Positions 4,413 to 40,969 of a stretch of 64,000 nt of DNA are shown piece by piece. A model generated the notes under the pieces. The model had not been told where the DNA came from, did not search any database, and saw only the letters and a program-made list of their open reading frames with translations. The translations under genes were made by a program, and so were the position numbers. Numbering within the stretch: position 1 is the first letter of the stretch; each line of letters starts with the position of its first letter. This DNA is from Setoptus koraiensis (Eukaryota > Animalia > Arthropoda): positions 14,136,001 through 14,200,000 of the forward strand of contig CM106585.1 in assembly GCA_048013815.1 (NCBI GenBank). The letters run 5' to 3'.

Positions 4413-4486
4413 GGATTCGAAAGTTCTTTCTATCGGGATTCGAAAGTTCTTTCTATCGGGACTCGAAAGTTCTTCCCATCGGGATT
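4413..4486. repeat. 23-bp tandem repeat, about 3.2 copies (GGATTCGAAAGTTCTTTCTATCG)
   Basis: Units start at 4413, 4436, 4459 and 4482; head-to-tail with no spacers. Confidence 0.9.
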
Positions 4487-5743: not shown

Positions 5744-6304
5744 CTACCGGGTCATGTCTTGTGCATATCGGCGAGCTGACAAATATATGTTTCCTTGTGG
5801 GTCGAATCGTCTTATTTTGCAGGATGTAGTAGCGCCCAGAAAAACAAGGTCTCGTCGGACGTATCCAGCAGCACTTTGTGGGTCGTGTGCATTTATTCTG
5901 ATGTCACCTTCGATGGCCAGGTGAAAAAGTTTGCTGCTGCTGGCTGCCTGTTTGGCCATTGTTCTCTGGCCAGTCAAATGGATACGATGGCGACCATCAA
6001 ATTTGCATATTTGGGCTTCATTTGTTGGAACGGGTTTTGTTTTCGGCGACGCATCGCTGATAATTGATAGTTGATACTCGTTGCTACAATTGGTTGTAAA
6101 ATTGCTGAAATTGATAAAATTATTGTCACGTTTGAGCTGGTGGTTGGAGGCGCTGACTCGTTGAACGTGCAACGAGCAAGCAGCATTTAGCACGGCCAGA
6201 GCAGCGGCCGTGAGTAGCACATCCGTAACTTGTATCATTTTGGTGGCGTGGTGGCTGGTGTTGGGGTGCTGCAACAACGGGGTTTTTCTACTGACGACAC
6301 TCAA
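5744..6304 (-). CDS. Possible first exon or fragment of an uncharacterised secreted protein
   Basis: 186-codon ORF with a signal-peptide-like segment (MIQVTDVLLTAAALAVLNAACS). Downstream minus-strand ORF fragments (to about 3950) are Asn/Thr/Gln-rich but broken by stops; exon structure unresolved. Confidence 0.3.
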   Translation of the reverse strand: MSVVSRKTPLLQHPNTSHHATKMIQVTDVLLTAAALAVLNAACSLHVQRVSASNHQLKRDNNFINFSNFTTNCSNEYQLSIISDASPKTKPVPTNEAQICKFDGRHRIHLTGQRTMAKQAASSSKLFHLAIEGDIRINAHDPQSAAGYVRRDLVFLGATTSCKIRRFDPQGNIYLSARRYAQDMTR

Positions 6305-6532
6305 ACGGTAAAGTCCCTTTTGTGTCCCGTCTCGTATTCCCCTGCAATTGATCTGACTGTAAACTACAGTCTGTAGTTGCTGATAATCACAGTCTGATTG
6401 CTTCCTCTATTTGGTTCTGTATTGTCAGCTGATTGTATCGGCGAAAATTGATTTGCAAGCGACGATTTATTGACAATGGCTTTTGTCACGTTTTGCAGGC
6501 TGTTGCAAAATCAATATTTATTCTATTCTATC

Positions 6533-6571
6533 TCTAATTATCTTCTAATTATCTTCTAATTATCTTCTAAT
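6533..6571. repeat. 11-bp tandem repeat (TCTAATTATCT) x3.5
   Basis: Read directly from the sequence. Confidence 0.85.
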
Positions 6572-8244
6572 GAGTGCAACAAGCACCAATCAACAAGTAC
6601 TGGCTGGATCTATTATCTATTTATGCACACATTTGCAATTGGTCAACACACTCACACAGCAAAAAAAAGGATGCCTGTGTGAGCCTCGGGATATATATCG
6701 GGATATATGCACGCCAAACAGCACGTGATACGACGCTGATGACCAGTCAATAATGAAATGAGATAATGTTGCAATCATCACTGTTCACATACGACAGCAA
6801 CGTTTGCATGCCTCACAACTTGTCAAATCGAAAACTGAAAACCATGCCGCCAGTACACCAACCAATGTCAATTGCAATGCAAATATTATATAAATATTTT
6901 GTCTATTTTCTTTCGATCATATCAACGCCGGCTACTAATATCCACCGTCCAAATATTTAGTAAAGAGAGTGTACTACTGACGTAATCGCATGTTCGACAC
7001 TGTTCAACGGTAGCCTCAAGTGTTCACTAAACTATTTTGTATCGCCATAGAATACTAAAATTTCACACGACACATACAAATGTGCAATTTAGCATACTGT
7101 TCAGTTAGTAAGCAAACTATGGCCAACTGGAGGATCGAGGTCCTATCACCATTTAATCAGTAGTCAAGTGGAAAAATAGACAATGACAAATATACCAACT
7201 AGCAATTGATTCAAATAAGTATACATCTTACAGCCAGCTCATTGTGTGTAACCAGCAACAATCATTATTTGCATAAAGTACTCGCAAATTATAGTTGAAC
7301 TCTCAATACAATGACATAAGTGATATAAAATGATAATGTTGCTCACTAGGCAACGTTGTGAGTCTAAAATAACTACAGGTTATTCGCCTTACCACACAAC
7401 AACAATTGAAAATCTGTTATGCCCAAAAGGGAAGCGGCTTTTTTATGGATTTTCTGCAAATTAGATGCAAATGATACAACTCCATCAAAATGTTCATTGA
7501 GATTAGCTCTCTTTGTGCGCAATAACAAAGGCAATAGACTTGGCAAAGTATGCTGACTCATAAATCATGAACAGACTGTCAATATCAAATTGAGTCCCCT
7601 CGTATCCATGTGTCTTGTTTATGTCTTGCCAGGTTATAGTCAAATGAATTCATCAAGACAGAACAAGTTCACTCACAAGTCGCAAATGATGCAAGAGTTT
7701 TGGTTCGTATTCATTGGTTCATTAATCAATTAATCGAGAGGCAGGTGAAATTGGTCGCAACATTACAGTGAAACACCTTGTACTACTACTCAATAACACT
7801 TTGGATTGGGACTTGTTTCTGTCGAAATAATGCCTGGCTATTCTAGTAGATGATATCTACTAGATTCTCGTGTATTTCACTTTGCGTGCACTAATGTTAC
7901 CCGATTCCAGTGAGTTCAACTATTGTTGCTTTGTTGCAACTATTCATTTTATGTTTTGCAAGTGACCCATTGTGACGTCATGTGCCCAACAAATACAACA
8001 ACAACAAAAACATAGAGTTTATTGCACTGCGAGGCCCAATGACGGACGGAAAGCTATCCATAGCAGTTGCTGATTTTAATTTTTCAACAAATTAAGCGAA
8101 ACTTTTAATAGTTGCGGGCCAATTGCACAGCAATGAGTTCACAGGTAGTAGGTGAAAGTTTGAGAGTTTAGTTTACATGTTATGAGAGATCGCTCTTCCT
8201 GAAAGGACGTGATAAATTATATTCACATCATGATTGCACGGTGA

Positions 8245-11200
8245 TTAAGTTCGGCTGCCAACGTAGATGATGTTAGAATGACTGTCGTGATTATTGGTCA
8301 CATGACTAGTGGTGATTGTTGGATTTTTGTTACAATCGTATATTATACTATCGGTAGAATTACAAATACTTGTGTCATTGCTGTTTCCATCATAATTTTC
8401 ATCATCTTCATTATCCAGATTAGCGCCTAGGCATACTAGCAGGCAACCAAATGCTGACTTACAAATCTCAACGACAAACACCGAAAAACAGCCCAGTCCG
8501 GCCAATAGCAACATGAAACTGGAACTCATGATTAAAAACGGATAATATTGTTGTTGGTGATAATGATATTCATCTATGGCACTAACATTAACGGGTTGAT
8601 CCAATTTGATGATGCTGCTGCCGCTGTTATTTGGTGCCAAAATTCCACTTGAGGAGTGATAATCATCAATTACGTTCAATAATGATGATGATGGATGATT
8701 GGTGTCGTTAATGTTGGGCGAATCTCCACTAACTGTCATGTTGGCAATTGTTATCAGATTATTATTATAAGTTGTCTCGTTAGTTGCATCGGAAACATTG
8801 ATACCATCCAAGCTGAATAGATGCAACATATGCAGTATCTCTATAGTCAGTATTAAAAATAAACCAGTGAAAAACATTGTTAAACAGTATGGTAATGTTA
8901 TTGATTGCTCTTGGCAACTATGCAAAGATGCTGTTGTGTCTTCTCTGATGGTATTTGACTTTGCTTCATCTTTCGATTTATCCCTCGAAGGCGGCAATAT
9001 TGATCGATCTATGCGACATTGCTGGGCCTGTTGCCGATGTTCATTGATTGAGGCATTCTCAAAAGAGCTCGCTTGACTGTCGCTATCCTTGTCGAAATCA
9101 AACTTGGAGCAATTGGTGAAACTGGCTACAATAACACTGTTTGTTTCAATCATTAAGTCAAACAATAAATTGTTGATGACATAGTGTATTATAGCCACAC
9201 TTAAAAAAGTTTTGCTGAATAAATCCAATACTTTGTCTTCTGATATCACATAGAATGAGTATGACATTATTAGGCATAAGAGGCCAGCTAAATTTAATCT
9301 TGATATGAATTCAATTCGACAAAATACCAATTGAAACACCAGCACTCCGATAATCTCGCCCACGGACCACAAAGTAACCGGACTCAGAATTATGTCACAT
9401 ATATCTAGCGGTGCTATCATGTAAGAGGACACTATATCTACGCTTATCAGTAATAGTGTCAGACAGGTGATTGTGGTCGCAAATTGCAGTAGGCACATCA
9501 AGTAAAATCGATAGCATTTAAGCAATTGCGCAATCATGGTCAGTATAGATTTAATTGGCTCGGTTTGTATTGAGTTATCAGTTTCGTGGCTGCCTATGTC
9601 GTCCGTATCTTGATGACGATCGCATTCATCGATGGATATGAGGTTAGGATGCAAAATAATACTGTCTGATTCGTTTCTTGTAATATGCATTTGTTGTGAT
9701 ATTGTAACTGGTACAGGACATGGGTTTAGGGACACACTGTCGGCCATTAATAGACTGGGCTGTTTCACTAATGCTTGCTTATGATAGCAGTTGACTAAAC
9801 TAAGTGGAACGTTCTTTGGTATATCATCGCCCATATCCAAAGAGTTGTGCATTGCCTCATCGGCTTGACTAGAATTGTGAATCACATGCGAATCCGCAGT
9901 CGATTCACAACTAGTCTGCTGAGATCTTCTAAGTATAAAACGATTTCTCAAGGCTCGCCTCTCGTAAGAATTCATCGATTCACCCTGTCGACACGATGAC
10001 AACTCGGCCAAGCTACCTGATTGAGGTCCCGGGGTTGCGTTTGGACTGGACACAACGCTGGACATTCTAAACTCTTGCTCTAACTCTATCCTTACCCTCT
10101 CGAAATCTGTCGATCTTAGAGTCTCCGATCTATGATAATAGTTGGGCTGTTTAGTAGCTTTCGTTATTGTTAAGAAGGTTGATGTTGCGGCTTTGTTGCC
10201 CTGTAGCTGATCATTCTGCATCATATTTCCAGGGTTGAATGTTTGTGCCAACGATGCCAGATTGGGTAGGATTTTTTTCATGAGGCATTTCAAAAAGTTT
10301 TTCACTTTCTCGCCTAGACCCTTCAATAAAACGAAGAGTGGCATACCTGAGTAATCTATTCCTTGAAGACTTGCACCGGGACCAAAGATGGCTATTGATT
10401 TCCATTTCGCGAGGGCTTCGCTGTATGAATCATCACAGTCCTGATCGTGGTCAGTAATTTTGATTGACACTCCTTCATCGTGCTGGTTCGTGAAGGAGAC
10501 CACTGCACTTGCCGTAAGAGACAACAGATGTATAAATGCTGACGTGATGAAATATGTTTCGAGACAAAACTGATTGGCAATATTAAATAGAATGGGCTCC
10601 ATTACGGCCAAGCCAACTGATGGGCCCAAAGTTATCAGTAGGAATGCAAATCGTTTGAATGTGGCAAAATTGTCGTCTATCATCCTCATCACTATAATGG
10701 TTGTCATCGACATGGACACTCCTTGAGCTAGGCCGAGTGTTACCAAATCAATTAGAAAATTTCTCTCGTTAATTTGCGACGCTAGAATAAAGCCAACAAA
10801 AGATACAAATTGACTTGAGACAAGCAATGATTTTGCATTCATTTTTGGCACAATCACTATGGCCATTATTCCAATAGTTGTATAATGAATGACATACGGC
10901 ATCAACATTATCCATGCCATCTGATAGTTACTGTAGTTGGAAGATTTGAGCAGTTCCTCATGAAGCAGAGGATATAATTTGACTGTTGACAGACTCAGAA
11001 GCGACACCATGAACAATATTGCAAACCTGAGCCATATTGACATAATGTTGCATCTGCCATCGCTACATTCGTGCGACGAAGAGGCGCCATCGAGATCAAT
11101 TTTGACCTGGTCGCCATTTTGTCCCTTTTTCAATTTTTGCAACTTGCCATTGATGTCCCGATGACCAGCGGATATGTTTTGCTGCTGTTGTGTTTTTGCA

Positions 11201-11376
11201 CAAATGGACAGATTGTTGGCGTCCACTTTGCTCAAGCTGTCCGATACAGATGCACTGCGACTGTTCTTGATTTCCTCCAGCACGTAAGCTAGGGGATCGT
11301 CGGTGGACTCCTTCTCTAGGGTGGCATCTTCGGCGATGGCCACAATGTCATCTGAAATATTTGCATTTGCCATCAT
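8245..11376 (-). CDS. Divergent monocarboxylate-transporter-like (SLC16/MCT, MFS) protein, 1043 aa, intronless
   Basis: Two hydrophobic TM clusters separated by a long polar cytoplasmic loop. N-half pattern (LYPLLHEEL...QMAWI; LGLAQGVSMS...DDNFATFKRFAFLLITLGPSVGLAVMEPIL) parallels the MCT pattern (FGVLF.EL...AWI; GLG...YF.KRR.LA.GI...G..VG...PPL). Confidence 0.72.
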   Translation of the reverse strand: MMANANISDDIVAIAEDATLEKESTDDPLAYVLEEIKNSRSASVSDSLSKVDANNLSICAKTQQQQNISAGHRDINGKLQKLKKGQNGDQVKIDLDGASSSHECSDGRCNIMSIWLRFAILFMVSLLSLSTVKLYPLLHEELLKSSNYSNYQMAWIMLMPYVIHYTTIGIMAIVIVPKMNAKSLLVSSQFVSFVGFILASQINERNFLIDLVTLGLAQGVSMSMTTIIVMRMIDDNFATFKRFAFLLITLGPSVGLAVMEPILFNIANQFCLETYFITSAFIHLLSLTASAVVSFTNQHDEGVSIKITDHDQDCDDSYSEALAKWKSIAIFGPGASLQGIDYSGMPLFVLLKGLGEKVKNFLKCLMKKILPNLASLAQTFNPGNMMQNDQLQGNKAATSTFLTITKATKQPNYYHRSETLRSTDFERVRIELEQEFRMSSVVSSPNATPGPQSGSLAELSSCRQGESMNSYERRALRNRFILRRSQQTSCESTADSHVIHNSSQADEAMHNSLDMGDDIPKNVPLSLVNCYHKQALVKQPSLLMADSVSLNPCPVPVTISQQMHITRNESDSIILHPNLISIDECDRHQDTDDIGSHETDNSIQTEPIKSILTMIAQLLKCYRFYLMCLLQFATTITCLTLLLISVDIVSSYMIAPLDICDIILSPVTLWSVGEIIGVLVFQLVFCRIEFISRLNLAGLLCLIMSYSFYVISEDKVLDLFSKTFLSVAIIHYVINNLLFDLMIETNSVIVASFTNCSKFDFDKDSDSQASSFENASINEHRQQAQQCRIDRSILPPSRDKSKDEAKSNTIREDTTASLHSCQEQSITLPYCLTMFFTGLFLILTIEILHMLHLFSLDGINVSDATNETTYNNNLITIANMTVSGDSPNINDTNHPSSSLLNVIDDYHSSSGILAPNNSGSSIIKLDQPVNVSAIDEYHYHQQQYYPFLIMSSSFMLLLAGLGCFSVFVVEICKSAFGCLLVCLGANLDNEDDENYDGNSNDTSICNSTDSIIYDCNKNPTITTSHVTNNHDSHSNIIYVGSRT

Positions 11377-13491
11377 CTATTGATGCACCCATTTACCCCT
11401 TAGTTGTTTGTACTCTGGCATGCGACGGCTCTTTCGCTGTTGATGTCACTGTAAACTGTGTTTCCTAGCCTGTTGACTTTCCACTACCGACTTCGGGTCA
11501 GGCGCAAAAAGTGACCACAAACCTGATGCAACAAGTCGCTTTGTCTTGAACTAAAACGATGCGAGATTTGAGATTGTACCGTCATTTACTTGCGCTTTCT
11601 GGCGACGATTTTCGGTTGTTTACTTCATACTTCGTGCAACAGAAAACTGGTGAATTTTGGTGTTCAATCAAGGCTCATTAGGCGCAAATGATGATCACTG
11701 ATCAGTTCCACTGGACGCAGTCAACAATCACAATGTTTCGATCGCTCCAGATATTGATTACGTGACTACCCTTTAAATTGGATAGAGCCAATGAATAATT
11801 CATTTATATAGCCACTGTATACGTCAGCTAACGCTGCTGATTGTTGCATGCTGGCAGTCTTATAAGATCACTAGATCGCTTGAGCTCATGCGGTAACAAT
11901 CTCACTAATCTGTGGCCATTAATCTTAAGCCTAAACTCAAGCTAGAATATTGTTATTCCTATTTATAACAAAAAACATAGATATAATTATATCGATCAGT
12001 GTCTATTGCTGTAAACAACAATATTATTTAACATTTGATTTGTGGAAGCAGGGGGAAACGACAAATCAACAATTGTTGTGTTTTATGACATTAGCAAAAT
12101 CAAGCAAACAAATAGCTCGTTTGTTGATTCGGCAATCGCTAATTGCCCCCAGCGTGACAAAACAATTGTTGCTAGTCATGTTATGAGCACGAAGGGGGAA
12201 ATTTTCCAGTTGCTCGATTCATTCAATTCTGACACAAACTGTTCCTATCCGACTGATCCTCGCATGTGAGAGCCAGACTCGGCGCCCACGACGGGTCAAG
12301 GATTGCTATAGTTGGATAACCAGTTGTTTGCCGAAAATTTTAAGCCGAGTCCCAGATTTCAAATGGAAAAAAAGCGCTGGAGCACTGGAAAGTGAAAATT
12401 TTCGCTATGACATTTCATTCCTCATTGAGGGACGGATTATGAAACTGCGACATGCTGCAAACAGATTGTACCAAAAATGAACGTGATGTAACATGAATGA
12501 AGGGATTCTAGTTAAATCCTCCTGAGTTTGCCTGTGATCTGTTGACAAGCAGCGATTCACTGTATAGTTTAGCACAACATTTATGACCTATCGGAAAAAC
12601 TCCACAATAAATGAACAATCCAACCTCATGTTCAATTCAATTGCCTCAACTGATTATGTACCATTGATCTATCAATTACGGCCAACAGTTTGGCGAACTT
12701 CTAGAAATTACGCCATGCCATCACCAAGATAATAAATCCAATAAGGAATTGCATAACTATTGTTGACAATTGTTTTTTTTTTCATATATTTGCCCATTAT
12801 ATGGCATGCAGATCGTGGGCTACAAGTGTCGATCCAGCCATAAGCGATAAGCCATTAACAGGTAAGCCGATGTTTGCATTTCAACACGACGAGATCCTAA
12901 CTAGAGCGCTGAACAAGCTTACATAGTAATATTACGGATTGTTTGATACAAACTGAGTTGGCAATTCAATATGGACGGATATACTTTTTGGCAAACTGTA
13001 CACACGGAATGTTTCTCAGGTAAGCCTCAGCTGGTGGGCAGTGGGCCCAGGTGAGAATATTGAGCCGACGATGTTTGCTGACCGGCTCCGACTGCCAGCG
13101 CGAACAGTGGGTGTCAGCCAGTCAGGTGTGTAGATCGCTAAACTTGTGACAATATTCAACAGCAAGATGAAACAGCATCACAATTTACGTACAATTTTGT
13201 TTTTATACAGCACGCTATTGTCTAGAGATGCCGCGAGATACGTTTGCGTCTCGAGAATCTCAAGCTGATGAGCGAGCGCGAGCCCCATCAATTAATTACT
13301 GCAACAACAGATTGTTATTGTGATATTGTAACACAGCATCTTGATTGGAGCGGCAATGCTGCACGGATCATCGCAAAAAAATATATGGCTTTTTACAATC
13401 ATTAAACGATATCTGAATAACTGGTATTACAGGCAGTGGTGGCAGTTGTTGTTGCTGTAATCAATTTATTTGTTGCATGATCTAGCCTAGG

Positions 13492-14259
13492 ATGGCGCAA
13501 CAACAAGTCACAATGGTGAGACCATCAAAAAGAAAAGAATCGCCATTGGTGTCAGAGAGCAATGAGGAGACTGAGCAAATGGACTCAAATCGCCAGCCCA
13601 TATCATATAACAACAGCGGTGTTGCCCCAATGGAAACTAACGCCTCTGCCTCTCAGCAGCAGCAGCAGGCAACAGCGTCTACAAGTGGCGGTGACAATAC
13701 TATTAAAATTCTAAATATTAGAAAATTCTCAGGCGATGACACAGAGTTTGGTCAGCAATGGCTGAATGATATTGAGTCGGCTGCTCTGATTAGCGGTTGG
13801 CCAGAGTGGCGTCTATTGTGCAATTTCGAGTTGCATTTGCAGGGCGCAGCCCTCGAATGGTACGAAAATCGCATTAGTAGTAGCAGATTTAATATCATGT
13901 GGACCGAATTAAAGCGCAAGTTTTTAGTGAGATTCGAGCCATCTAAGCGCACCGGTTGGTCGAAATTCTTTCGCAGTATGTGGGATCCGTCAGTGGAAAC
14001 ATTGGAGGTGTTCTATGACAGAATGACATACATTGGCAGGATGAACAAATTCGACGAGGATCTCATTGTTTGGATAATGACTACCGCCTTGCCAGACAAT
14101 TATTTGGGCTGCTTCTTGGATTTAATCAAATGTGAATCATGTTCGGAGTGGTTCGACATGGTTAGTGAGGCAGTGAAACAGGAGAATAGGAGAATAATGC
14201 TGGCTAATCAGCACGACCAAATCGGTCAAATGCACAAGAGGCCGCGATACGACAACTGA
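13492..14259 (+). CDS. Stand-alone Ty3/gypsy Gag capsid-domain protein (Arc-like, candidate domesticated gag), 255 aa
   Basis: Retrotransposon-gag capsid motifs: KFSGDD...QQWLNDIE...GW...LHLQGAALEWY...WTELKRKFLVRF, plus an MHR-like segment WDPSVETLEVFYDRMTYIG. No CCHC knuckle, no downstream protease/RT/IN, no flanking direct repeats seen. AATAAA at 14349-14354. Candidate splice acceptor TTACAG at 13427-13432, upstream of the ATG. Confidence 0.82.
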   Translation: MAQQQVTMVRPSKRKESPLVSESNEETEQMDSNRQPISYNNSGVAPMETNASASQQQQQATASTSGGDNTIKILNIRKFSGDDTEFGQQWLNDIESAALISGWPEWRLLCNFELHLQGAALEWYENRISSSRFNIMWTELKRKFLVRFEPSKRTGWSKFFRSMWDPSVETLEVFYDRMTYIGRMNKFDEDLIVWIMTTALPDNYLGCFLDLIKCESCSEWFDMVSEAVKQENRRIMLANQHDQIGQMHKRPRYDN

Positions 14260-15739
14260 CACATTTGATGCCGTCATGTCACATTGAATCCATAGTAATA
14301 GCAATTGAACGATAATTGAGTGATTGATTGATGCTGATGACAAAACACAATAAATGATACATGTAATACTATCTCGTTGCACTGACTGTCATTTCGTGCC
14401 ATGTCCATAGCTCCTTATGTCAATTTTATCAGATGAAACTGATCGTCTTAGTTGCTGCCGCAACAATCCAAGCTGTGAGCCACACCATGCTGGGGCCCCT
14501 GCATGCCAAGAAGCAAACCGTTGATGTTGAGCGATCAAAACGATTCGATTAGCAGCCAGAGTGAAAGATTGTCACGAAACTGTTCATCGAGCTGTCTGTT
14601 GTGGCTCTATCATGGGGCATTCGTATTCAATGAATGAAGATACCGCAAGCCTCACTCGTCTCCTGGATAATATAACATAACAAACGGATAATTCGCATAT
14701 CCGTGCACTAGCTTACACCTCGGTATAGACATTGCGTGTTCGTGCACAAAAAAAGAAGCAAACGTATATATATCACACACGTCTCATATATCACATGGCG
14801 GATAAGAGGATATGCTCATTGCACAGGCGCCGAACAAACATACTAGCGTTCGCGACCTTACTTTTATCTCCCATTTTATTTAGACTCTCTGCTTGCACTG
14901 CTGAGAGCCCCAGTGCGCCCTCGAGTGTGTGTCCTCTCCGCCTGTCTCGCTAGCATGGGTAGGGGGTCTGAATGGAGGAACAATGGAACGGATAAGGAAA
15001 GCCTCTGTGGCTGCTGTGTGCATGAATTAAAGTGAAGAACCTCCACCACTATTTGAGTAGCTTGAGGAAGGAAGGATAATCGCGATAGATTAACCTCTGC
15101 TATCATCATTCCAAACACTCGCTCGTCAAGTACACGCTCTCGAAGCCAATTCGCAGCAATCAGAAGTGACCTTGCCCACTGTGATTGGTGGTTAGTTCAA
15201 CGAATCAGTTACAATATCAAATATACCACGAGCAACTGAGGACCATGTGAGACACAATGCACACCATCCAAGTCCGTGGAGTATAACCAAATATTATATG
15301 ATAATAACAATGTTGCCTCGAGTAAATTCTACGTCGACCAATCGCGGTCAATCAGAAGCATGGAAAATAATTGGTTCATAGTGAACGTTTCAATAGAGGA
15401 TATTCTTTGTTGAGTGACCTGCAAACTGAAGATGAGATCCTAGAGGCTTCTATTGCCAATGCAAATGCAAACAATCATATGAGCGGTGTCAACATCACCA
15501 AAGGGGCATTTTTTATATCTATTATCGCATCAATATTGTCTAAGAGATGTATACTGGTTAACATACTTACGTTGCATAGTGTCAACAAAGGTGGTGCTTT
15601 GTTTGTCAGTAGCACCAAATTTGATCAGGCCTCGCCACTGGCTCGCCTTTGCCGATCGAGCTATCAATTCAAGTATACATACATTATCAGCTATAACCTT
15701 TGCTAATATATACCTATTATTGAAAATTAATTTATCAGA

Positions 15740-18210
15740 ATGGCAATCAGACCCCTAGTTACCTTACCAAATGTCCATCTGGGCACATATATACAGGGAT
15801 GCCCCAAGTCAGACGCTAGATGCATTACATCGAGAAGAATGGCATCCAGCTTGTCTTGCTTGCCATTCAGGGCTGACCACAATCACTATACAATTGGAAA
15901 CAACAGAATTCGAAGCACCACTCGCACCTTACACAATAATTACCATTATATCACATTGAATATCAACAATCACAGTTACATATCAGCCGCTCATTTGGGA
16001 ACAGTGAGGCCCGAAATGAGGAAGCTGGCTGCATATTCACAGACGAGAGCTTGTTTTACTAACAGTGGCCGTCAGAATCCTCTAGTCAGATCAGTAGCTA
16101 TCCAATGTGATAATTGTGGCAACGGTGTTGTCGGTCGTCGTGGCTATGCCACAAAACATGATAAATACCTGAGCAGTAATGACTCATCAACCGGCGGAGA
16201 CCAGCAACAGAAAAGGGGTTCGCCAACATTCAAGGACAGCATATTCTTCAAGCGAAACAAACAACAAGATTCAGCGGCAACAACGAGTAACAATGGTCGC
16301 CAGAATGAGATCTCCGTGTCAGTTGATACAGACATTCCCGCTGCCAGCGCCGACGACGACAACTCATCGGGTTCGAATCAACAACAGCAGCAAGATAAAA
16401 CAAGAAACAGGAACAACAGCACTTTTGTTCATCGCAACGATCAGATAACACGTCAAAATAGCGGCCAAATTAGACAATCACAGTCGGATCAGACAGCCAC
16501 TGATGCTGACCAATTGACAGAAACAGCGGAGGATCTCATTTTTGACATGTTCAACAACGGTAACGATGGTATCAAGATAAAGGAGTTTCTATCGTCATTA
16601 TCGACTGCTGGCTTACATTACGACACCGATCCTAGATTGAATGAATTCAAGAAGAACCTCAAGGCGCTGAGACGAGACGAGGGCCCCATGAGCAAGAAAG
16701 ACTTCAAGGCGGCCATAAAGCCAAATATAGTGCTGATTAGTCGAGCGATGCGAGGCGATTTTGTTATACCCGATTGGACACGTTTTACCAAAACATTGGA
16801 GGAATTCTATTGGCGATGTCGCATTAATAAGAATGGTAAAGTTGCCAATTATATACCACAACTGGCCAAATACAATCCTGACTATTGGGGCGTGAGCATA
16901 TGCTCAATTGACGGTCAGCGTTATCACGTTGGCGATGTTGACGTTCCGTTCACTATACAGTCTAGTGGAAAACCGATAAATTATGCCATTGCCTTGAATG
17001 AGCTTGGCTCAACCATAACACACAAATACGTCGGACAAGAGCCATCGGGAAGATTATTCAATGATCTGTCGTTGAAGATATTCGACGAAAGCGGCCACCC
17101 GAAGCCACATAATCCAATGGTTAATTCGGGCGCGATAGTCACATGCTCGCTCCTGATGAAGCTCATTAAGCCGGACATGAGAAGCTCAGAGAAGTTCGAT
17201 TGGGTTTGCGATTTCTATAAATCCATGGCCGGTGGTGAGTATATTGGCTTCAACAATGCAACATTCCTATCCGAACGGGAGGCGGCCGACAGAAATTATG
17301 CCATTGGATTTTACATGCGCGAAAACAAATGCTTTCCCGATGACACAAACCTACAACAAGTAATGGATTTCTATTTTCAGGTGAGTCGCATGCAAGACTT
17401 TATTCGACAATTAAATACATATGTTGTGACAATTGTATCAACTGACAATTGAACTCTTGAATTCTTTACATCACCTCACTTCAACGCCTTCATCAATAGC
17501 TGTGCTCGCTTGAGGTCAATTGCAAAACAGTTAGCATGATAGCGGCCACATTAGCCAATGGTGGTATATGTCCAGTAACAGAAAAGAAGGTCATAGATAG
17601 CAGGGCAGTAAGAAATGTATTAAGCCTAATGCATAGCTGCGGGATGTATGATTACTCTGGCCAGTTCGCCTTCTATGTAGGACTTCCGGCCAAATCAGGT
17701 GTTTCCGGATGCACGCTTGTCGTAATACCAAATGTAGGTGGTTTGGGACTGTTCTCGCCGCCTTTAGATACATACGGCAATAGTGTCAGGAGTCTGCAAT
17801 TTTGTCATGAGCTAGTGGATCAGTTCAATTTTCATCAGTACGACAATTTGCGCCATGTTCCACATAAAAGCGATCCTAGAAGAAAGAAATACGAGACACT
17901 TGGATTGAACATTATTTGTTTGTTATTCGCTGCGGCCAAGGGTGACATGTCCGCCATAAGGCGCTACTATATGTCAGGAATGGATATGTCATTGTGCGAC
18001 TACGATCATAGGACAGCTTTGCATGCCGCTGCTGCCGAAGGCAATCTAGATATTGTTGAATTTCTATTGCAGGTAGCAAATGTGAATCATGAACCAAAAG
18101 ATCGATGGGGTCGACGTCCCATAGACGATGCATCCTATTGTGGTCACCTAAATGTTGTTGATTTCCTTAAAGCTTGGCCTCAAATAAAAGACCAAGGTGC
18201 TAGTCGTTGA
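15740..18210 (+). CDS. GLS: Glutaminase (kidney-type, with C-terminal ankyrin repeats), about 783 aa
   Basis: Exons 15740-17380 and 17500-18210; intron 17381-17499 (GTGAGT..AATAG, 119 nt) joins FYFQ|LCSLEV. Motifs GKVANYIPQL, FTIQSSGKP (catalytic S-x-x-K), PHNPMVNSGAI, SCGMYDYSGQF, PAKSGVSG, and ankyrin DYDHRTALHAAAAEG. Confidence 0.97.
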
Positions 18211-18898
18211 TGTTACATCTCCGTTTCCTATATTGTTAGTTAGACTAATGGAGATCAGGCTAACCATTGTTTTGTTGTTGTTGTATCATTGTAGCATCAT
18301 GTTTATCTCCAATGTGGGGAAAAGAACTAAAAATTTAAACACAAATACTTGTAATGTTATGTTGATCAATTATCTTAGTTTATTATTATACGATTATCCT
18401 ATCGACGAATAATTTTATAGAACAAATGTCTTATATTTAATGTCTATTCATTTGTATATAAAAATATAAATGAAACAATCATACATCATAACATCAAAAA
18501 CTCTTCCACTCCTGTGGATGCTATCACTGTGAATTCGAACTACAATTGAATGCTAGTATAATTATTATTGACTTCTTGCCTGCATCGATCGTTTGTGATA
18601 CAGTTCATGGAGAATTCATTTGTATTTGTTAGGAGAATCACACAACTAATCACAGCATACGATATATGATTTTGATGTCGTTGAAGCTTGAATCAAATGA
18701 AGAGTTTTCCGAATTAACAGATGAAGTCGACACTTTTGAATGGGAATCTGCATTTTTTTTTCTAGAAATAATTCAGTCATCGATGATGAACCAATATTCA
18801 TCGTATCAGATACACATAGACAATCTTTATCAATACGGAATACGCAGTTGTCTAGAGTAGTTTATTGAGCGTCATCAATTTATGCAAGTGAGCTACGA

Positions 18899-21566
18899 TT
18901 AATGTAAAAGATCATTCCATTGTTGTGGATTGGCCATTGGTTGTGACATTGGTGGTTGCTGTTGTTGTTGTTGTTGCTGGTGTTGTTGCTGTTGTTGTTG
19001 TTGAAGCTGCTGCTGTTGAAGCTGCTGTTGTTGTTGTTGCATTTGAATCTGTTGGGGTAGTCTACCTGCCGCTCGAACATGTCGCACTTGAGTGGCCATA
19101 GTCTGAGCTTGGGGCACCGATCTAAGCAACACAGGTTGCGTAGGTTGCTGGAGAATGTTCCTAAGAGCCTGAGCATTATTGTTTACGTTGACTTGCTGTT
19201 GCATGGTCATCCTTTGTTGATTTAGCTGACGCTGCTGATGTAATTGAGCCGGACTACTGTTGATAGTGTTAACAGTGGTCTGGTTCAACTGAGTTCTAAT
19301 AATTTGTGGACCAATCTGCTGTTGGTGATGAACTTGCTGTTGTGGCTGCTGTTGCTGCTGATTGTGAACTTGCTGCTCTGAACCATGCTGGGGAATATTA
19401 CAGTCTTGCTGAAATTCATTCTGCTTTTGGATCGCCTCTTGCAGTTGGTTTTGTAGTGTCTCAATCAAAAGTGAATTTTGTTGCCTTTGCTGCAGGGTTT
19501 GAGGTTGGCCCCCTTGATTACCAATGGTAGTATTATTAACCATGTTGTTGGATGTTATAGGCATCTGTTGAGAAGTCACCATGCCTGAAACTTGTTGTTG
19601 CATCATCGAACCGGGTATAGTTTGTTGGACATTCAAATTAGCGGCGTTGGTCACGATAATTTGAGGATGTCCAACCTGCTGATTTACACCTTGCACGTTC
19701 TGCAACAACTTTGACTGAGGGTGCTGCTGCTGATTACCAACTATTATCTGACCACCTTGAGTTGTTTGTACTACTTGATTCTGATTAGTAGAGTTCCCTA
19801 CACTTGAAGTGACTACATTGACCGATTGCATATTTATATTGGGCATAAAAGCTTTTGGTTGTTGCGGTGAATTCGCCACGGGCCCCAATGCCGTGTTGAG
19901 TAAAGGATTTTTCACCTGGGCCGGAGCTGATTGATTCACTTGCATGGACTGCATAGGCGACGTACTTATATTTCCAGCTAAATTTCCCTGGGCCAACTTA
20001 GTATTGTTGCCAGTGTTCGGCATTGATCCAGACCACACTCGGAATGCTCCTCTATTTTGCGGTGGAACTGATGGATTAGTAACTTGCTGTTGCGTCGGCT
20101 GCATTTGCTGATGGCCTTGGTTTTGACTATTAATAACAGAGACATTAGTAGATTGCACAATAATAGGAACTTGCTGTTGATGAAGCATACTTTGCTGGTG
20201 CTGCTGTTGCTGTTGTGGCTGCATTGGATTTCGGGGAATTTGCACTTGATGCCTCACAATGTTCTGGGGATGTTGGCCTTGTATCTGGTGACCCATGGTC
20301 ATGGTATTAGTAGAGTGCATCGACTGTTGTGTCACCTGATTTGACTGTGGCGAGGGCGCTTGTTTGTTTTGAACTACAGTTTGAATTGGAGACGGAACTA
20401 ACTGAGGTCCTGTCATGGTGTTCGCCGAAGATACCGGGTGGCTAGAGATCGGCATAGTTGACCTGATATTTTGCTGCATCTGTTGTTGTTGTTGCTGTTG
20501 TTGTTGTTGCTGTTGTTGTTGCTGCTGCTGCTGTAGCTGTTGTTGTTGCTGTGACAGTGGCTGTTGCTGAATTATTATTGGCCTAACAGAGTTGTTCTGG
20601 TTGTCATTCGGACCAGTTTGTCTCTGAACAGGTTGCTGCATGATGACAGTTTGGTATTGTTGTTGAGGCGAACTATTTTGTTGCTGGGCTTGATGTCTGG
20701 GTTGCTGAAGAGTCGATTGATTAGTGATACTCGTTTGCTGTGGAGTATTAGACTGCTGTCTATGATGCATCATAGGGCCATTCGGTGGAAGTTCTAGATG
20801 TTGCGACAAACTCTGTTGTTGGTTGCTTCTTGGACCTGTAGCTAGCTGATTGACTAATATCGGATTGGAGGTAATCTGTTGTGGAACAGATGTTACTGTA
20901 AAAGGGGAAGATGGCGACTGGTTGGAATTGGTGACGGTATTATTGTTTGTCCATGTGCCACGAGTAGAATTGTCATTGATAGAATTCTTTGTCTGTTGTT
21001 GCTGTTGTTGTTGTGACATTGGCTGTTGTTGCTGCTGCTGGTTGGGTGTAACTTGGCTCCTTTTGATGTTAGGTTGATTGCTCATCTGTTGAGGTGAGTT
21101 AATCATCTGCTGAGATAGAGGCGATTGAATGGAGTGCTGCTGAGACAGCGGCGATTGAATGGAGTGCTGCTGAGACAACGGCGATTGGATAGAATGCTGC
21201 TGAGGCGATGGTTGAGAATGAATCACAGGTGCTGGGGATGCGTGGGAAGCATGTCCCACTGATGAAGGTGAAGGATGCTGAGGTGAATTAGCAGGCGATA
21301 AGGGTCGCTTTTGACCCTTATTAGAGTGCATCGACTGTTGTGTCACCTGATTTGACTGTGGCGAGGGCGCTTGTTTGTTTTGAACTACAGTTTGAATTGG
21401 AGACGGAACTAACTGAGGTCCTGTCATGGTGTTCGCCGAAGATACCGGGTGGCTAGAGATCGGCATAGTTGACCTGATATTTTGCTGCATCTGTTGTTGT
21501 TGTTGCTGTTGTTGTTGTTGCTGTTGTTGTTGCTGCTGCTGTTGCTGCTGCTGCTGTTGTTGCTGT

Positions 21567-21598
<32 letters not shown>

Positions 21599-21617
21599 TT
21601 GTTGCTGCGCTTGTTGC

Positions 21618-21661
<44 letters not shown>

Positions 21662-23245
21662 CTGTTGTGTCATTGGTTGTTGTTGTTGTGACATCGGTTG
21701 TTGCTGCTGCTGTTGTTGCTGCTGTGTCAAATGTGCATGCTGATTTTGCAATGCCTGAGACTGATTTGCGCCTACGTTTAAAGTTTGTGATCTCTGAACG
21801 GGACCCTGCAAAACCAGCTGTTGGGGAGAAGGCTGCATACTGGAATTGTTGTTTGCCTTCTGCAAATTCTTGGAGGCTACTGAATTGGAACTTGAGTTAT
21901 TGCTACCAACGCTGCCGTTATTACTTAACAGAGCGTTAAGATTGGCATTTTGCTGCTGCGTTTGCGATGGTGCGTGCTGTTGCTGCTGCGTCAAAGATGC
22001 CTTACCATCTAGGTATTGGCGTTTATTATTATCATTGATTGCATTTATTGAGGGTGGCGATGTTTTGATGTTAGCGTTTGCTGTGGTGCTATTGCTAGAG
22101 TTAACATTGATGATAGTTTTATTGTTGTTGTTGATACCATTATCAGAACTATTATTTGTATTGTTCTGAGTTTGTGTGACAGATAGAGTAGGCGAATTTA
22201 GCAGATTGGCTGATTTCACAGATGGTGGACCAGTATTAATAGAGGACGATGCAGTGGGATTCTCTTGTAGTTGATAATCTCTGAGTAAGACTAAATGTCT
22301 GGGATCACGGGCATATAATTTGCTTAAGGCAGAATGCAAGTCACCACCGGCCTTCTCAAACAACTTGAATAAAAAGGACATCTTCCGTGGCGTTATAATC
22401 GATAAAGAGATCTGGCGTTCGCACATACAGCCAACAATGCAATCTAAGTCCAGTCCAAAGTACGACGGACTCTCTATGCATGGAGTTTGATAGGGCGGTG
22501 AGTTACATATCAATATACAATGCTTACTTCTCTTGGCTGGTTGCTTTTGTTGTTGTTGTTGCAGTACTGGTTGTGGTGATAACTTACAATTAGCGATAGT
22601 GTTGTTAGCATTATTACTGTTAGAAGTATTATCAGTTTTAGCGCTATTATCTTCGTTAGTATCAATTTGATCATGATTATTAGTCAAATGATCATCTTTC
22701 TTGGTGGTGATGTTATTATTACTACTACTCTTGTTATTATTTGCGTTATTAGTGCTGGTGGTGGTGTTAGAGGTCTTATTGGTGTTGTTGTTTTCGCTAT
22801 TGCTAGTTTTGCTGTTGTTGGTTACCAATAATGAAGAAGATTGCGATAGTTCATGTAGTGCTTGGAAGTCATCGAATATTTGCAAGGCCGATGCCATTCC
22901 TTCTGTGACATGGCTTAAATTTTCAGCTCCGCCACCAACAAATTGTAATGTCTCAATCCATAACAATAGTTTATGCGCACTAGATGTGGGCCCAATACAG
23001 ATGGAAGCCGGTTCTGGTGCAGAATTAATAGTGTAATAGGCAACAAGAGCAAATAAAGAATTACCACAGTTGGCAGCATTTCCATAAGTTCGGTCCTCCA
23101 GAGGATAGCCGCAAAAATGTTCTAGAGTGGGTATAATATAATTAGTTTTAATACTCTCTATGTAGGCACCCAAATTGGCTGTCGCCTCCAGAATGAAAAC
23201 AACATCAGCCGCCTGACTAGAGGGGGGCGATGAGTTACAATCCAT
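18899..23245 (-). CDS. MED25: Mediator subunit 25-like, 1448 aa, intronless, Q/N-rich
   Basis: N-terminal MED25 VWA domain: DVVFILEATANLGAYIESIKTNYIIPTLEHF, LQFVGGGAENLSHVTEGMASALQIFDDF, KHCILICNSPPY, ISLSIITPRKMSFLFKLFEKAGGD, DPRHLVLLRDYQL. The remainder is low-complexity; the C-terminus ends in an LL-type motif (WNDLLH). Confidence 0.9.
20311..20530. repeat. 220-bp intragenic direct repeat, copy A (copy B at 21322-21541)
   Basis: No mismatch found by eye between the copies; offset 1011 bp; encodes a Q-run followed by MQQNIRSTMPISS...TQQSMHS twice. Confidence 0.92.
21111..21200. repeat. 30-bp coding tandem repeat x3 (QQHSIQSPLS)
   Basis: Units at 21111, 21141 and 21171, within MED25. Confidence 0.9.
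21322..21541. repeat. 220-bp intragenic direct repeat, copy B
   Basis: Matches 20311-20530. Confidence 0.92.
21491..21667 (-). repeat. Mixed CAA/CAG polyglutamine tract (59 codons, one Ala interruption)
   Basis: Read directly, within the MED25 ORF. Confidence 0.92.
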
Positions 23246-23904
23246 GGTTGTGATGGGGCGGCGGTTGTTGTCGATTGTGGCCTGGTTGCGATATCTATTG
23301 GTATTGTTGGTGATGTTGATGTAGAGGTGTTGCTACAGTAATATCAACGATAATAATAATAATAATAATAGTAATAGTAATAATATATTGGGGGCAATGA
23401 TAATAGAATAGGTAATAATAATATCTATAATAGTGTCTCTGATAATGTCTGTAATAGTATTATCGGCATCAATATAGTGGTAATAATAATAATAATAAAC
23501 CTAATAACATTTTTTGCTCTAGTCTCGATTGAAGTCCATGTCCAATGATGCCATTATTATTTACGAATAACGTCGTCGTATACAACGATTGTGTTTGTGT
23601 GTGTGTGTGAGTGTGTGTGTGCGAGAGTATGAGTGTCAGTGTAGACCTTGATTATATCCTTCTATAAAAAATTGTTGTGATTCGTCAATTTTGGTTCGAT
23701 ATGCTGTCGTTCGATCAGTGTGCCTGCGTGTGTAAAATGTTCAATTAAGTAATAATGTTGTTGTTGTTGTTGTTGTTTACTGGAATATAATATCTCTGCG
23801 TCTTTATTCTCGATCTTGCGGAAGAATTATCATGAGAATTTTTGTTAATATATATGTAAATGATAATCAATATCAATAGTAATAGCAACAGTCGTTCTCG
23901 GTCG

Positions 23905-23961
23905 CTCTCTCTCCTCCTCTCTCGCTCTTCCTCTCTCTCTCTCTCTCTCTCTCTATCTCTA
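23905..23961. repeat. (CT)n/(GA)n microsatellite in the MED25-Rap1 divergent intergenic region
   Basis: Pure CT run 23931-23954 with degenerate flanks. Confidence 0.85.
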
Positions 23962-24942
23962 TCGGAAGAACAAATCTTATAGAACCATGATGTGATGAAA
24001 ACAAGAAGAAGACTCTCTTTTTGGCTCCCCTCCTTTTTTCTCTTTCATTGGGGCAAACGTTGGCAAGGAACAACAAGATGACGACTACTGCGACAACGAC
24101 GACGGCTACAACGAAACTAGCATATGCGATTCTATTCTGTAGTTCTTTTCTGTCTGTCTATCCCTCTTTCGCTCTTTCCAATGAATCTGGCACATACTGT
24201 ATCTGTGAGTGTGTGTGTGCATATAAATATACAAACTATAGTGTATAAAACTGGTACAGACACACACACACAGACGCACATGCACATGAACAAACAGACA
24301 GACAGACAGACGGACAAATGGGCCAACTGATCGGAGCTATTAGCCGATTTGTCGGGCCTAGTGATGTACTGACAGAAAGATAGAAAGAGAGCGAGCGATA
24401 CTAACGAACATCATGTTGAATGAGGTATTATTAATATTTTATGAACTTTTGTCGTGTTTGCTCTGATTCCATTATTACTATCGGCATTATTCGGCAGTAT
24501 ACCGAGAGTTAAATACAACAATATCACTGACAAAATAATAATGACAACAACAACAACAACGACAATAATAACGACAACAATTAATAAGGAGAATGATAAT
24601 AATGATTAAAAAAGCCAACAACTTGTACCACTATGTTTGAACAATCAAAAAACAACAATTCTTGTATCCACAAATGCCGCCCTATGTTCTGTGGCAAAAT
24701 ACCCTACACGCCCACTCCTACCGCGTACCCTTGTCAGCAGGTGTTCGTACTTGTCGCTCTCTCGCTCTCCCCTCTTTCTCTGTGTGTGTGTCTCTATCGT
24801 TGCTTGCACCGCAATCCGCCTGCCTGTTTGCCTGTTAGTGTTGTGATGCGCGAAGTGTCAGCGGCTGTTTTGTGCGCATGGTCTGTCTGTCAATTGTCAT
24901 AGGTTTCGTCTATTGGTGCGTCTGTTGGCGAAACAACATACG

Positions 24943-25581: not shown

Positions 25582-26239
<658 letters not shown>

Positions 26240-26370: not shown

Positions 26371-28182
26371 CTAAAATCCTCCTCTCCTCAGCTGATGGAG
26401 GTATCTATCGTTACTCGATCCATCCATAGTCTGATTGGACTGAGTGGGGAAGACGTTATTTCCAAATTGTGCATTGGACATCACTGACTGAGGATGATTC
26501 AAGTGGGTAGATTTGTTGGGCATTGAGAAGTTGTCATTTCTGTTATCATTTGATATTGGGTTAGTAGAGCGCCAAGACGATGATGATCGCTTCCAGTCAT
26601 CTTGCCAGTAGTTATCTAACTCTCTTGGATCCCTCTCACGTTTAAGTCCTCCTGCTACTGGGATTGGTGGGGGCACTAGGCTAAGAGAGTCGTTCATTCT
26701 GCCGCGTGGCATGCCTGATTGAGCTGCTTGTTGACGCTTTCTTAATTCTTCACGTTCTCTGGCTAGACGTTCACGCTCAGCGGTAGTCTTTTCTCGTTCA
26801 ATTCTTAGTAGATTAGCCCTTTCTCGTTCGAGATTTTCACGTTCTATACGCAACTTTTCTTTTTCGCGTTCTAATCGATCTTTTTCATCACGTTGTCGGC
26901 GTTCTATATCGCGCTGTCGGCGATAAAATTCATCCTGGCGCCTTCGGTCCTCCCGGAAGGTCCTCACCCTTTCTCGTTCTCTGAAGCGACGTTCTACCTC
27001 GGATCTTTTGTCTATGAGTCGACTTGTGAAGCCACCTCGCCTAGTGCCCAGAAATGGCCTTCTGATTGGTGAGTGCCTGATTGGAGATTTGTTAGAGGGT
27101 GACATGCGGCTTCTCTTACGGTCTCGGCTAGAATGCCTCTTTCGACTGACACTGCTACTTCTCTGGGAGCCATCTTTATCTTTATCTTTGTCTTTTCTCT
27201 TCTCTTCATCTTTATCCTTCCTCTTCTCCTCGTCCTTATCTTTTCTCTTTTCTTCGTCTTTATCTTTCCTCTTATCCTTCTCATCGTCCTTCTTCTTCTC
27301 TTCATCTTTATCTTTTCTCTTCTCATCATCTTTGTCCTTCTTCTTTTCCTCATCTTTGTCTTTCTTCTTCTCCTCATCTTTATCTTTTTTCTTCTCTTCA
27401 TCTTTCTCTTTTCTCCTTTCATCTTCTTTATCCTTTTCCTTCGCTCTATCCTTCTCTCTCTTCTTCTCTTCATCCTTCTTCCTCTCCTCGTCTTTCTTTT
27501 TCTCCTCATCTTTGTCTCGATCTACATCCTTCGAATTATCTTTGTCTTTCTCTCTCCTTCTATCATCATCTTTCTCTCTCTCCTTATCTTTGTCTCTCAC
27601 CTTCTCCTTCTCTTTTTCCTTCTCTCTCTCCCTGACTTTATCTTTCTCTCTTCTTCTTTCATCATCTTTGTCGGTTGTTTTGTCCTTTGTCTCTCTCTTT
27701 TTCTCTTCATCTTTGTCCCTGGGTTTGTCTTTCTCTCTCCTCTTCTCATCATCTCTGGATTTATCCTTTTCACGTTTCTTTTCGTCATCTCTTAATTTAT
27801 CTTTTTCTCTACGACTATCATCTTCTTTGTCTCTAGTTCGGTCTTTGTCCCTTTTCTTTTCGTCATCCTTAGATTTATCCTTGTCTCTCTTTTTTTCGTC
27901 GTCCTTGGGTTTATCTTTATCTCTCTTCTTCTCGTCGTCCTCTTTGACTTTATCTTTATCTCGCCTCTTCTCTCTCCGGCTTCTATCTGATGATTCCTTG
28001 GTTTTTTCCATGTTATGTTTGTTGTCAGGGGTATCTTTTACTCTATCATTCCTGAGCCTATCTGAATTAGTATTATTGGTATCATTGTTGTTAGAATCAT
28101 CCTGTTCGCGATATTCATTATCCTCTACTTTGATTTGAACTGCATCAGTGATGGTCGAATCAATGTCACCGTTGTTGTCCAT
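26371..28182 (-). CDS. SAFB/SLTM-like nuclear protein (K/D/E/R-rich plus R/E coiled coil), 603 aa
   Basis: The coiled-coil block EKDRLEREKEKLRIERENLERERANLLRIEREKTTAERERLAREREELRKRQQ and the following LKRERD..YW motif resemble the SAFB/SLTM C-terminal half. Long EEKRKDKD-type repeats and an RS-like patch. No SAP or RRM domain visible. Confidence 0.58.
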   Translation of the reverse strand: MDNNGDIDSTITDAVQIKVEDNEYREQDDSNNNDTNNTNSDRLRNDRVKDTPDNKHNMEKTKESSDRSRREKRRDKDKVKEDDEKKRDKDKPKDDEKKRDKDKSKDDEKKRDKDRTRDKEDDSRREKDKLRDDEKKREKDKSRDDEKRREKDKPRDKDEEKKRETKDKTTDKDDERRREKDKVREREKEKEKEKVRDKDKEREKDDDRRREKDKDNSKDVDRDKDEEKKKDEERKKDEEKKREKDRAKEKDKEDERRKEKDEEKKKDKDEEKKKDKDEEKKKDKDDEKRKDKDEEKKKDDEKDKRKDKDEEKRKDKDEEKRKDKDEEKRKDKDKDKDGSQRSSSVSRKRHSSRDRKRSRMSPSNKSPIRHSPIRRPFLGTRRGGFTSRLIDKRSEVERRFRERERVRTFREDRRRQDEFYRRQRDIERRQRDEKDRLEREKEKLRIERENLERERANLLRIEREKTTAERERLAREREELRKRQQAAQSGMPRGRMNDSLSLVPPPIPVAGGLKRERDPRELDNYWQDDWKRSSSSWRSTNPISNDNRNDNFSMPNKSTHLNHPQSVMSNAQFGNNVFPTQSNQTMDGSSNDRYLHQLRRGGF

Positions 28183-40138: not shown

Positions 40139-40889
40139 GGCTCAAGTGAAGGTTTTCAATATTACGTCACACAGACTATTGTTTGTTGTTGGCGACTGGA
40201 CGATGCTATTGCGTGCCATTGTCAATGTGTTAGCTTGTCAGCTTGTTGACCCATCCATTCAGGTTGCTTGTTTATTGTCGCGTGCAATATTTATAGAGTG
40301 GACAACAATTGTTGTTGTCCGCTCTCGTTGATAGCCCAGTGAATAACTGTCAACTGTCTACAATAAAAAAAACAAGCTTCTTTTTGTCAGGCTGGCCAAC
40401 TGTTTGCTCATATATATATATATATATACTGTGTATGTATTACGTGTTAATGGTCATTATGTAATTAATGTTGCCACTTTGTTGCTAGCGCAACAAGTCA
40501 AATGACATACAAACGCACATAAATTAATCGCTGACCCCTTGTTAATGAGTTGGCTGGCTATTTGATTGATGTCACGCCACAATCATTAACAAGTCGATGT
40601 AAAGATTGATACAAATATGCGCTGCAAACACACGAAAGTGTCACATGCTGATCGATACTTCTGCATATTGCAATTTGCAACACGACGTGTATTAGCACAG
40701 TGTGGAGTCCATCGGGCCATGCTGGCCCAAACTGGCAAAAACAGCAAACAATTTCTCACACGACGACGACGACGACAAATTCCAAATCAATCGGTCAAGC
40801 AGTGAGTTAACAAGTTAGGGGCTAGATAAGGGACAGCGTGCGCTGGTTGTTGGGTCACGTCACACCAAGGCCAACATCGGCCCGTGATC

Positions 40890-40969
40890 GACGGCTAGCC
40901 AACGACGACTAACCAATGACGACTAGATAGCGACGACTAGCTAACGACGACTAGCCAACGACGGCTAGG
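40890..40969. repeat. 14-bp minisatellite (GACGACTAGCCAAC), about 5.7 copies
   Basis: Units at 40890, 40904, 40918, 40932, 40946 and 40960. Confidence 0.88.

Follow-up and report, generated by a model that had tools for sequence, protein, structure and literature searches.

A solitary Ty3/gypsy-type Gag capsid reading frame in an eriophyoid mite genome: truncated retrotransposon remnant or co-opted gene

Analysis of a 64-kb stretch of genomic DNA (the window) showed an intact reading frame, here called the gag ORF, that almost certainly encodes a Ty3/gypsy Gag capsid, as judged from sequence profiles and a predicted fold. The reading that we favour, with a probability of about 0.5, is that the ORF is the remnant of a truncated retrotransposon and is not under selection. 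Co-option as a host gene, all functions taken together, would be less probable, at well short of even odds. The features on which the analysis draws are as follows.

8245..11376, minus strand: upstream host ORF of 1,043 aa, in divergent orientation, without Pfam or PDB sequence match
11377..13491, no strand: 5′ flank, non-coding, without TE protein similarity and with no repeat in common with the 3′ flank
13492..14259, plus strand: the solitary gag ORF, 255 codons followed by a stop, with a Ty3/gypsy-type N-terminal region and a two-lobed capsid domain
13492..13722, plus strand: N-terminal region, residues 1-77, predicted disordered (pLDDT 53-66), Q/S/N/T-rich, net charge -1
13723..13935, plus strand: capsid N-lobe, residues 78-148, a short strand and helices 87-101, 105-114, 118-127 and 137-148
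13945..14124, plus strand: capsid C-lobe helices, residues 152-211, comprising 152-161, 171-184, 189-198 and 202-211
14140..14256, plus strand: C-terminal helix 217-248 and short basic tail, residues 217-255, aligning with the linker ahead of the CCHC knuckle of three relatives, P0001, P0003 and P0005
14260..15739, no strand: 3′ flank, extending to where the glutaminase begins, without Pol, knuckle motif, or Pfam family in its ORFs
14349..14354, plus strand: AATAAA hexamer 90 nt past the gag stop, a possible polyadenylation signal, though a single hexamer may occur by chance
15740..18210, plus strand: glutaminase (EF-hand_14, Glutaminase, ankyrin), exon ORFs 15740-17452 and 17536-18210, searched separately

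The gag ORF carries no internal stop and no frameshift across its 255 codons, and its ATG lies two codons past an in-frame stop. Its stop-free run of 257 aa was longer than the longest run that 300 shuffled versions of the intergenic sequence 11377-15739 produced (mean 110, maximum 190 aa), which bears out the uninterrupted frame reported by the initial annotation. The same annotation had described a disordered N-terminus of about 60 aa; disorder was indeed predicted, but over about 70-77 aa. Both motifs that it quoted were located in the translation, one at residues 169-178 and the other near the C-terminus. The former, which it had labelled 'MHR-like', lies inside the C-lobe, and its first residue, E169, is invariant in the six closest sequences. 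Net charge is -6 overall, made up of -1 for residues 1-77, -5 for residues 78-216 and 0 for residues 217-255.

In composition the ORF stands somewhat apart from its surroundings. GC3 was 0.53, as measured on just 255 codons, and exceeded that of each of the window's ten host genes (0.37-0.46), suggesting a composition that has not equilibrated with the host. Codon adaptation did not discriminate, as the non-coding flanks (0.75-0.77) scored within the range of the ten host genes (0.69-0.82). Composition was continuous across the region of the gag ORF.

Identification as a capsid protein was supported by both profile and fold. Pfam family Retrotrans_gag (PF03732) matched residues 112-183 with a score of 31.6 bits, where 24.1 is the curated cut-off (E = 2e-7). 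A search of PDB sequences with the single sequence gave only a weak match, to the Arc N-lobe (E = 0.29). When a family profile of the gag ORF together with 55 relatives no longer than 500 aa was used, the best match was dArc1 (6.4e-23), with further matches to the Arc capsid domain of human and rat (2.7e-18 to about 3e-18), dArc2 (8e-18), Ty3 Gag (2e-11 and 2.5e-10), the Copia VLP protein (9e-10) and PNMA2 (9e-8). An AlphaFold2 monomer model, computed from the family alignment, had a mean pLDDT of 83.8, with residues 78-248 above 90, and contained 4+5 helices within residues 87-248. In a Foldseek search of the PDB with this model, the leading ranks were all capsid proteins. The dArc1 and dArc2 capsids came top, with probability 1.0 and a TM score of about 0.6 (E = 1.8e-5 for the dArc1 capsid domain); PNMA2 was matched at TM 0.51-0.58 and Ty3 at probability 0.87-0.92, and Arc CTD, PEG10 CA-CTD and Copia were also found. 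Against viral models, metavirus Gag ORF1 was the best match, with caulimovirid coat proteins and retroviral Gags next in rank. The Gag capsid identity proposed from the letters alone was supported by Pfam and the profile, and both of its lobes by the AlphaFold2 model and Foldseek; the Arc and Ty3 capsid structures, with which the initial annotation had proposed a comparison, were both matched by profile and by Foldseek. Similarity to Arc and dArc was at the superfamily level only, with 14-21% identity in the Foldseek alignments. Accordingly, the description as a solo Ty3/gypsy capsid gene held, with both lobes, an Arc-like fold and no NC, Pol or LTRs, and the ORF is no orthologue of Arc or dArc.

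Relatives of the gag ORF were few and distant. An exhaustive phmmer search of 1.84 billion representative proteins, with no length limit and E ≤ 1e-3, returned 77, only four of them below 1e-10. The best, P0001, is a protein of 318 aa with 35% identity (1.4e-23), and the top five (P0001-P0005) all come from short Logan contigs, as singletons or near-singletons. Among representatives of about 15 billion proteins, many eriophyoid-derived assemblies included, no relative exceeded 35% identity. A word-indexed search of 5.8 billion proteins of 140-446 aa with the whole ORF found zero relatives, although the same search also misses P0001-P0004, which are present in the collection; with the alignment as query it returned P0005 alone, again missing P0001-P0004, which are in both alignment and collection, and its blanks call for caution. 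Over the capsid core, the gag ORF is 29-32% identical to P0001-P0004, whereas these are 35-62% identical to one another. On these alignments the gag ORF would be an outlier to a loose clade formed by the four. Its nearest proteins, at 29-35% identity, are saturated for dN/dS.

The relatives also indicate what kind of element the ORF came from and where it was cut. In the long relatives P0012, P0017, P0020, P0032 and P0043 the domains run Gag, protease, RT, RNase H, integrase, as in Ty3/gypsy (RT before IN). Kinship with such Gag-PR-RT-RNaseH-IN polyproteins, a Pfam score above the gathering score and two helical lobes together mark the ORF as a Ty3/gypsy-type Gag capsid. In the alignment, the start of the relatives coincides with the second Met of the gag ORF (residue 8), indicating that the native start is retained. 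A CCHC knuckle follows the capsid in P0001, P0003 and P0005, and the gag ORF ends inside the basic linker that precedes it; the NC part is missing, as from one 3′ truncation. Since the ORF ends where the relatives' knuckle begins, a single truncation of a single insertion explains its architecture as well as domestication would. The Pfam score of 31.6 bits compares with 16.9-32.2 for P0001-P0009. Being no worse than those of intact relatives, it gives no sign of decay in the capsid domain, which fits youth as well as constraint.

Searches for the rest of an element were negative throughout. No zf-CCHC Pfam match and no knuckle-spaced Cys/His motif was found in six frames of the flanks and the whole window. 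When the 77 relatives, seven of which are polyproteins of 1,252-2,707 aa, were compared with the 64-kb window by tblastn, they matched the gag ORF only; a relaxed search of the flanks for Pol traces (E ≤ 10) gave chance-level matches, and ORFs in both flanks had no Pfam family. No direct repeat of at least 25 nt brackets the gag ORF within 6000-24000, and a word-7 blastn of flank against flank returned nothing above 17 nt, consistent with chance. The absence of a zinc knuckle, of protease, RT, RNase H and integrase, and of an LTR pair, all asserted by the initial annotation, was therefore corroborated. None of the three features of a complete LTR retrotransposon (LTR pair, Pol domains, CCHC knuckle) was found. 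A solitary 5′ LTR in 11377..13491 would be unrecognisable, however, because there is no second copy with which to compare it. The gag ORF is present once in the window, detached from any element, and no other TE signal was found there. Scans of the window for tRNA and Rfam families gave zero matches.

These results bear directly on the suggestion that the protein might carry RNA. By Pfam, motif scan and charge, a nucleic-acid-binding module, whether knuckle or basic domain, is absent from the gag ORF. The missing zinc knuckle and the acidic net charge (-6) both weaken the idea, and RNA trafficking is the least supported part of the initial annotation.

The host and its genomic setting were examined through the neighbouring genes. 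The glutaminase shares 73% identity with its counterpart in Fragariocoptes setiger (Eriophyoidea) and 67-75% with those in about 20 further assemblies, compared with at most 61% for other mites, ticks, spiders and scorpions. The host is therefore an eriophyoid mite, in agreement with the mite host proposed from the sequence; the collection searched lacks its own proteins, as high-identity matches were absent there for the gag ORF and the glutaminase alike. Eriophyoid genomes are 23-35 Mb in size, intron-poor and TE-poor, with TEs amounting to 1.54% in A. lycopersici, and their gene order has been reported as 'very little conserved'. Gypsy elements occur nonetheless: A. lycopersici has 70 kb of LTR/Gypsy DNA, in which one copy of 5,475 bp shows 0% divergence (PMC7738191 supplement), and Floracarus has 140 kb of Gypsy DNA.

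The window itself is gene-dense, with long single-exon genes that include Med25, RCC1-like, WD40, PRC1/MAP65 and PAP2 besides the glutaminase, and the gag ORF lies alone in a 4.4-kb intergenic stretch. It had been placed between an MCT-like gene and a GLS gene. The glutaminase is there, as is the 1,043-aa ORF upstream, but the 'MCT-like' identity of 8245-11376 gained neither Pfam nor PDB sequence support. That minus-strand ORF may encode a fast-evolving or lineage-specific membrane protein. The gag ORF might also have been an upstream exon of the glutaminase; this was excluded by the stop codon and the 1.5 kb between them, and a fusion is seen in no relative.

Several further observations concern the window at large. 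Med25 (18899-23245, minus strand) is a single exon of 1,448 aa with very long CAG/CAA (poly-Q) tracts, an internal duplication of 263 nt (20307-20569 and 21318-21580, 95% identical) and a tandem repeat of 30 nt x3.3 at 21107-21204. A 603-aa ORF at 26371-28182 (minus strand) is extremely K/D/E/R-rich, without a Pfam family and with strong strand skew. It contains tandem repeats of 24-nt period at 27179-27669, and the opposite-strand ORFs 27008-28138 and 27133-27795 look like by-products of this repeat. A 169-aa ORF at 25588-26097 (plus strand) appears by eye to be an exon of a Ras/Rap-type small GTPase, with a P-loop at its N-terminus. Two small tandem arrays lie at 4413-4486 (23 nt x3.2) and 40889-40968 (14 nt x5.7).

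To be accepted as co-opted, a Gag should display shared synteny or a host-congruent phylogeny, plus selection, according to Wang & Han 2021 (PMC8321522). Their study of 2,011 eukaryote proteomes reported 14 deep Gag co-option events, none of them in chelicerates (PMC8321522). Synteny was compared here at glutaminase loci only, 13 in number and drawn from eight related mite sources. Gag-like coding potential was absent at all 13, where the neighbours seen in the window are not kept either; neither the 1,043-aa ORF nor Med25 had a homologue at any of them. Because the flanks differ in every source and gene order is scrambled, absence of Gag from these loci says little about an orthologue elsewhere. 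The glutaminase neighbours varied over the eight sources and included GPCR, kinase, TMEM208, CRAL_TRIO, ribosomal S19, PhyH, CPSF73-like and RFC-like genes, so that the loci (L001-L013) directly illustrate the scrambled gene order reported for eriophyoids. Two of the related mites have stretches lacking called genes upstream of the glutaminase, at L011 4725-10000 (5.3 kb) and L001 1545-10000 (8.5 kb), both without Gag-like sequence.

According to the favoured reading, one Ty3/gypsy insertion would have lost everything from the knuckle onwards, that is, NC, protease, RT, RNase H, integrase and the 3′ LTR. Such a truncation would leave an undamaged capsid ORF that keeps the native start of gag and breaks off within the linker ahead of the knuckle. 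A solitary 5′ LTR, no longer recognisable, might lie upstream and could drive transcription; the product of translation, if any, would be an acidic capsid-domain protein without a nucleic-acid-binding module. The ORF would then be intact through youth and not through any need of the mite. The GC3 offset, the position at which the ORF ends and the young gypsy copies of eriophyoids fit this reading. The absence of Gag beside glutaminase in the eight related mite sources was counted in its favour too, though it is uninformative given the scrambled gene order. Base rates point the same way: far more TE copies end up truncated than co-opted. Against a remnant stands the flawless capsid ORF, when the rest of the element is unrecognisable in 64 kb, and differential preservation of this sort is a classic mark of co-option. 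Moreover, eriophyoid genomes are so extremely streamlined and TE-poor that useless DNA should be short-lived, and the lack of any relative above 35% identity gives no sign of an abundant active family.

These objections to a remnant are what co-option would account for. In one form of it, the gag ORF would be a host gene whose product still self-assembles, the outcome of a Gag domestication in the mite lineage independent of Arc, dArc and PNMA. Both lobes are intact and confidently folded in the model, the best fold matches are to the capsid-forming dArc1/dArc2 and PNMA2, the rest of the element has vanished from a genome dense in genes and poor in TEs, the ORF stands isolated in sequence space, and an AATAAA follows its stop. 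A knuckle is not known from dArc2, Arc and PNMA2 either. We nevertheless consider self-assembling co-option unlikely, given the lack of an RNA-binding module with a net charge of -6, a GC3 unlike that of host genes, an architecture for which one truncation accounts, and a survey of 2,011 proteomes in which no deep chelicerate Gag co-option appeared (PMC8321522). Any particles formed would more likely be empty or protein-carrying than RNA carriers like those of dArc1, because there is no NC or basic region. Empty or protein-carrying shells have been reported for PNMA2. More doubtful still is a co-opted Gag that acts as a restriction factor, co-assembling with or capping the Gag of related retrotransposons and so poisoning particle formation. 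Ty1 p22/Drt2 in yeast and Fv1-type Gag-derived genes in mammals are restriction factors of this kind. A capsid domain without NC or Pol would suit the role, truncated Gag being the typical form of such inhibitors; Ty1 p22 and Drt2 CA-CTD structures were among the fold matches, at low rank, and the host group, poor in retroelements as it is, still has gypsy and copia copies that are live and open to restriction. With only 29-35% identity between it and its nearest relatives, however, the protein may be too diverged to co-assemble with current elements, and a related element is seen nowhere in the 64-kb window. Taking particle former and retroelement brake together as one eriophyoid-specific Gag co-option, independent of Arc, dArc, PNMA, RTL, SCAN and Crtg1, we hold it to be a tentative and somewhat unlikely reading.

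The gag ORF could also be a still-mobile, non-autonomous gag-only element, supplied with Pol in trans and with repeats that escape recognition, or an assembly artefact that joins TE and host DNA. A solitary LTR would be unrecognisable without its second copy, and the non-coding flanks, at 2.1 and 1.5 kb, are large for such a genome. With no direct repeat of at least 25 nt in 6000-24000, flank-versus-flank matches at chance, continuous composition across the region and host genes close on both sides, we judge either of these improbable.

Gag-to-host-gene conversions are rare, and each is a natural experiment in a new use of a capsid protein. Where a genome has been stripped of most of its introns, intergenic DNA and TEs, a flawless capsid-only ORF makes a sensible starting point in the search for another. 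If co-option were true, a complete capsid gene without NC would have been kept in a genome that ranks with the most streamlined known in animals, and this would be the first chelicerate case. Conservation in related mites would add a non-insect arthropod lineage and a very small NC-less capsid gene to compare with dArc2 and PNMA2. As a restriction factor, the gag ORF would help to keep the genome TE-poor. As a young truncated copy, it would be an ordinary TE remnant, its use limited to showing that gypsy elements have recently been active in this species.

The gag ORF can be compared with several known systems. Fly dArc1, unlike the mite ORF, keeps its zinc knuckle; it is known to be conserved, expressed and capsid-forming. 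Like dArc1 and dArc2 (PDB 6tap, 6taq, 6s7x/y), it is a Ty3/gypsy Gag cut down to an N-terminal region and a two-lobed capsid, alone in a host genome; identity in structural alignment is only about 14%, and its nearest kin are other Gags, so it is not an orthologue. The mammalian Arc capsid domain (PDB 7r1z, 6gse, 4x3h) has the same bilobed fold (profile E = 2.7e-18), but the N-terminal domain of Arc is large and basic and forms a coiled coil, where the gag ORF has an acidic disordered N-terminus, and their origins are independent. Yeast Ty3 Gag (PDB 6r22-6r24, 7q5b) and metavirus Gag ORF1 represent the parental kind by profile, fold and viral-library match, although Ty3 has a Gag with NC, followed by Pol, between LTRs, all of which the gag ORF lacks. 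Drosophila Gagr (PMC7231272) and beetle Crtg1 (PMC8321522) are likewise arthropod gag-only genes of LTR-retrotransposon origin, with synteny and selection established across families; their likeness to the gag ORF is one of description. Ty1 p22/Drt2 (PDB 7nli, 9rxy) is also a truncated capsid protein without NC or Pol, matched at low rank through the C-lobe fold, but it is of Ty1/copia type and CA-CTD only, whereas the gag ORF has both lobes and is of Ty3/gypsy type. The PNMA2 capsid (PDB 8rb3, 8uyo) is likewise a capsid domain that derives from Gag and has no RNA-binding module (TM 0.51-0.58); it belongs, unlike the gag ORF, to a family of mammalian genes whose synteny and expression are established, and the two share 16% sequence identity. 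In architecture, as far as its sequence and predicted model convey, the gag ORF resembles dArc2 and PNMA2.
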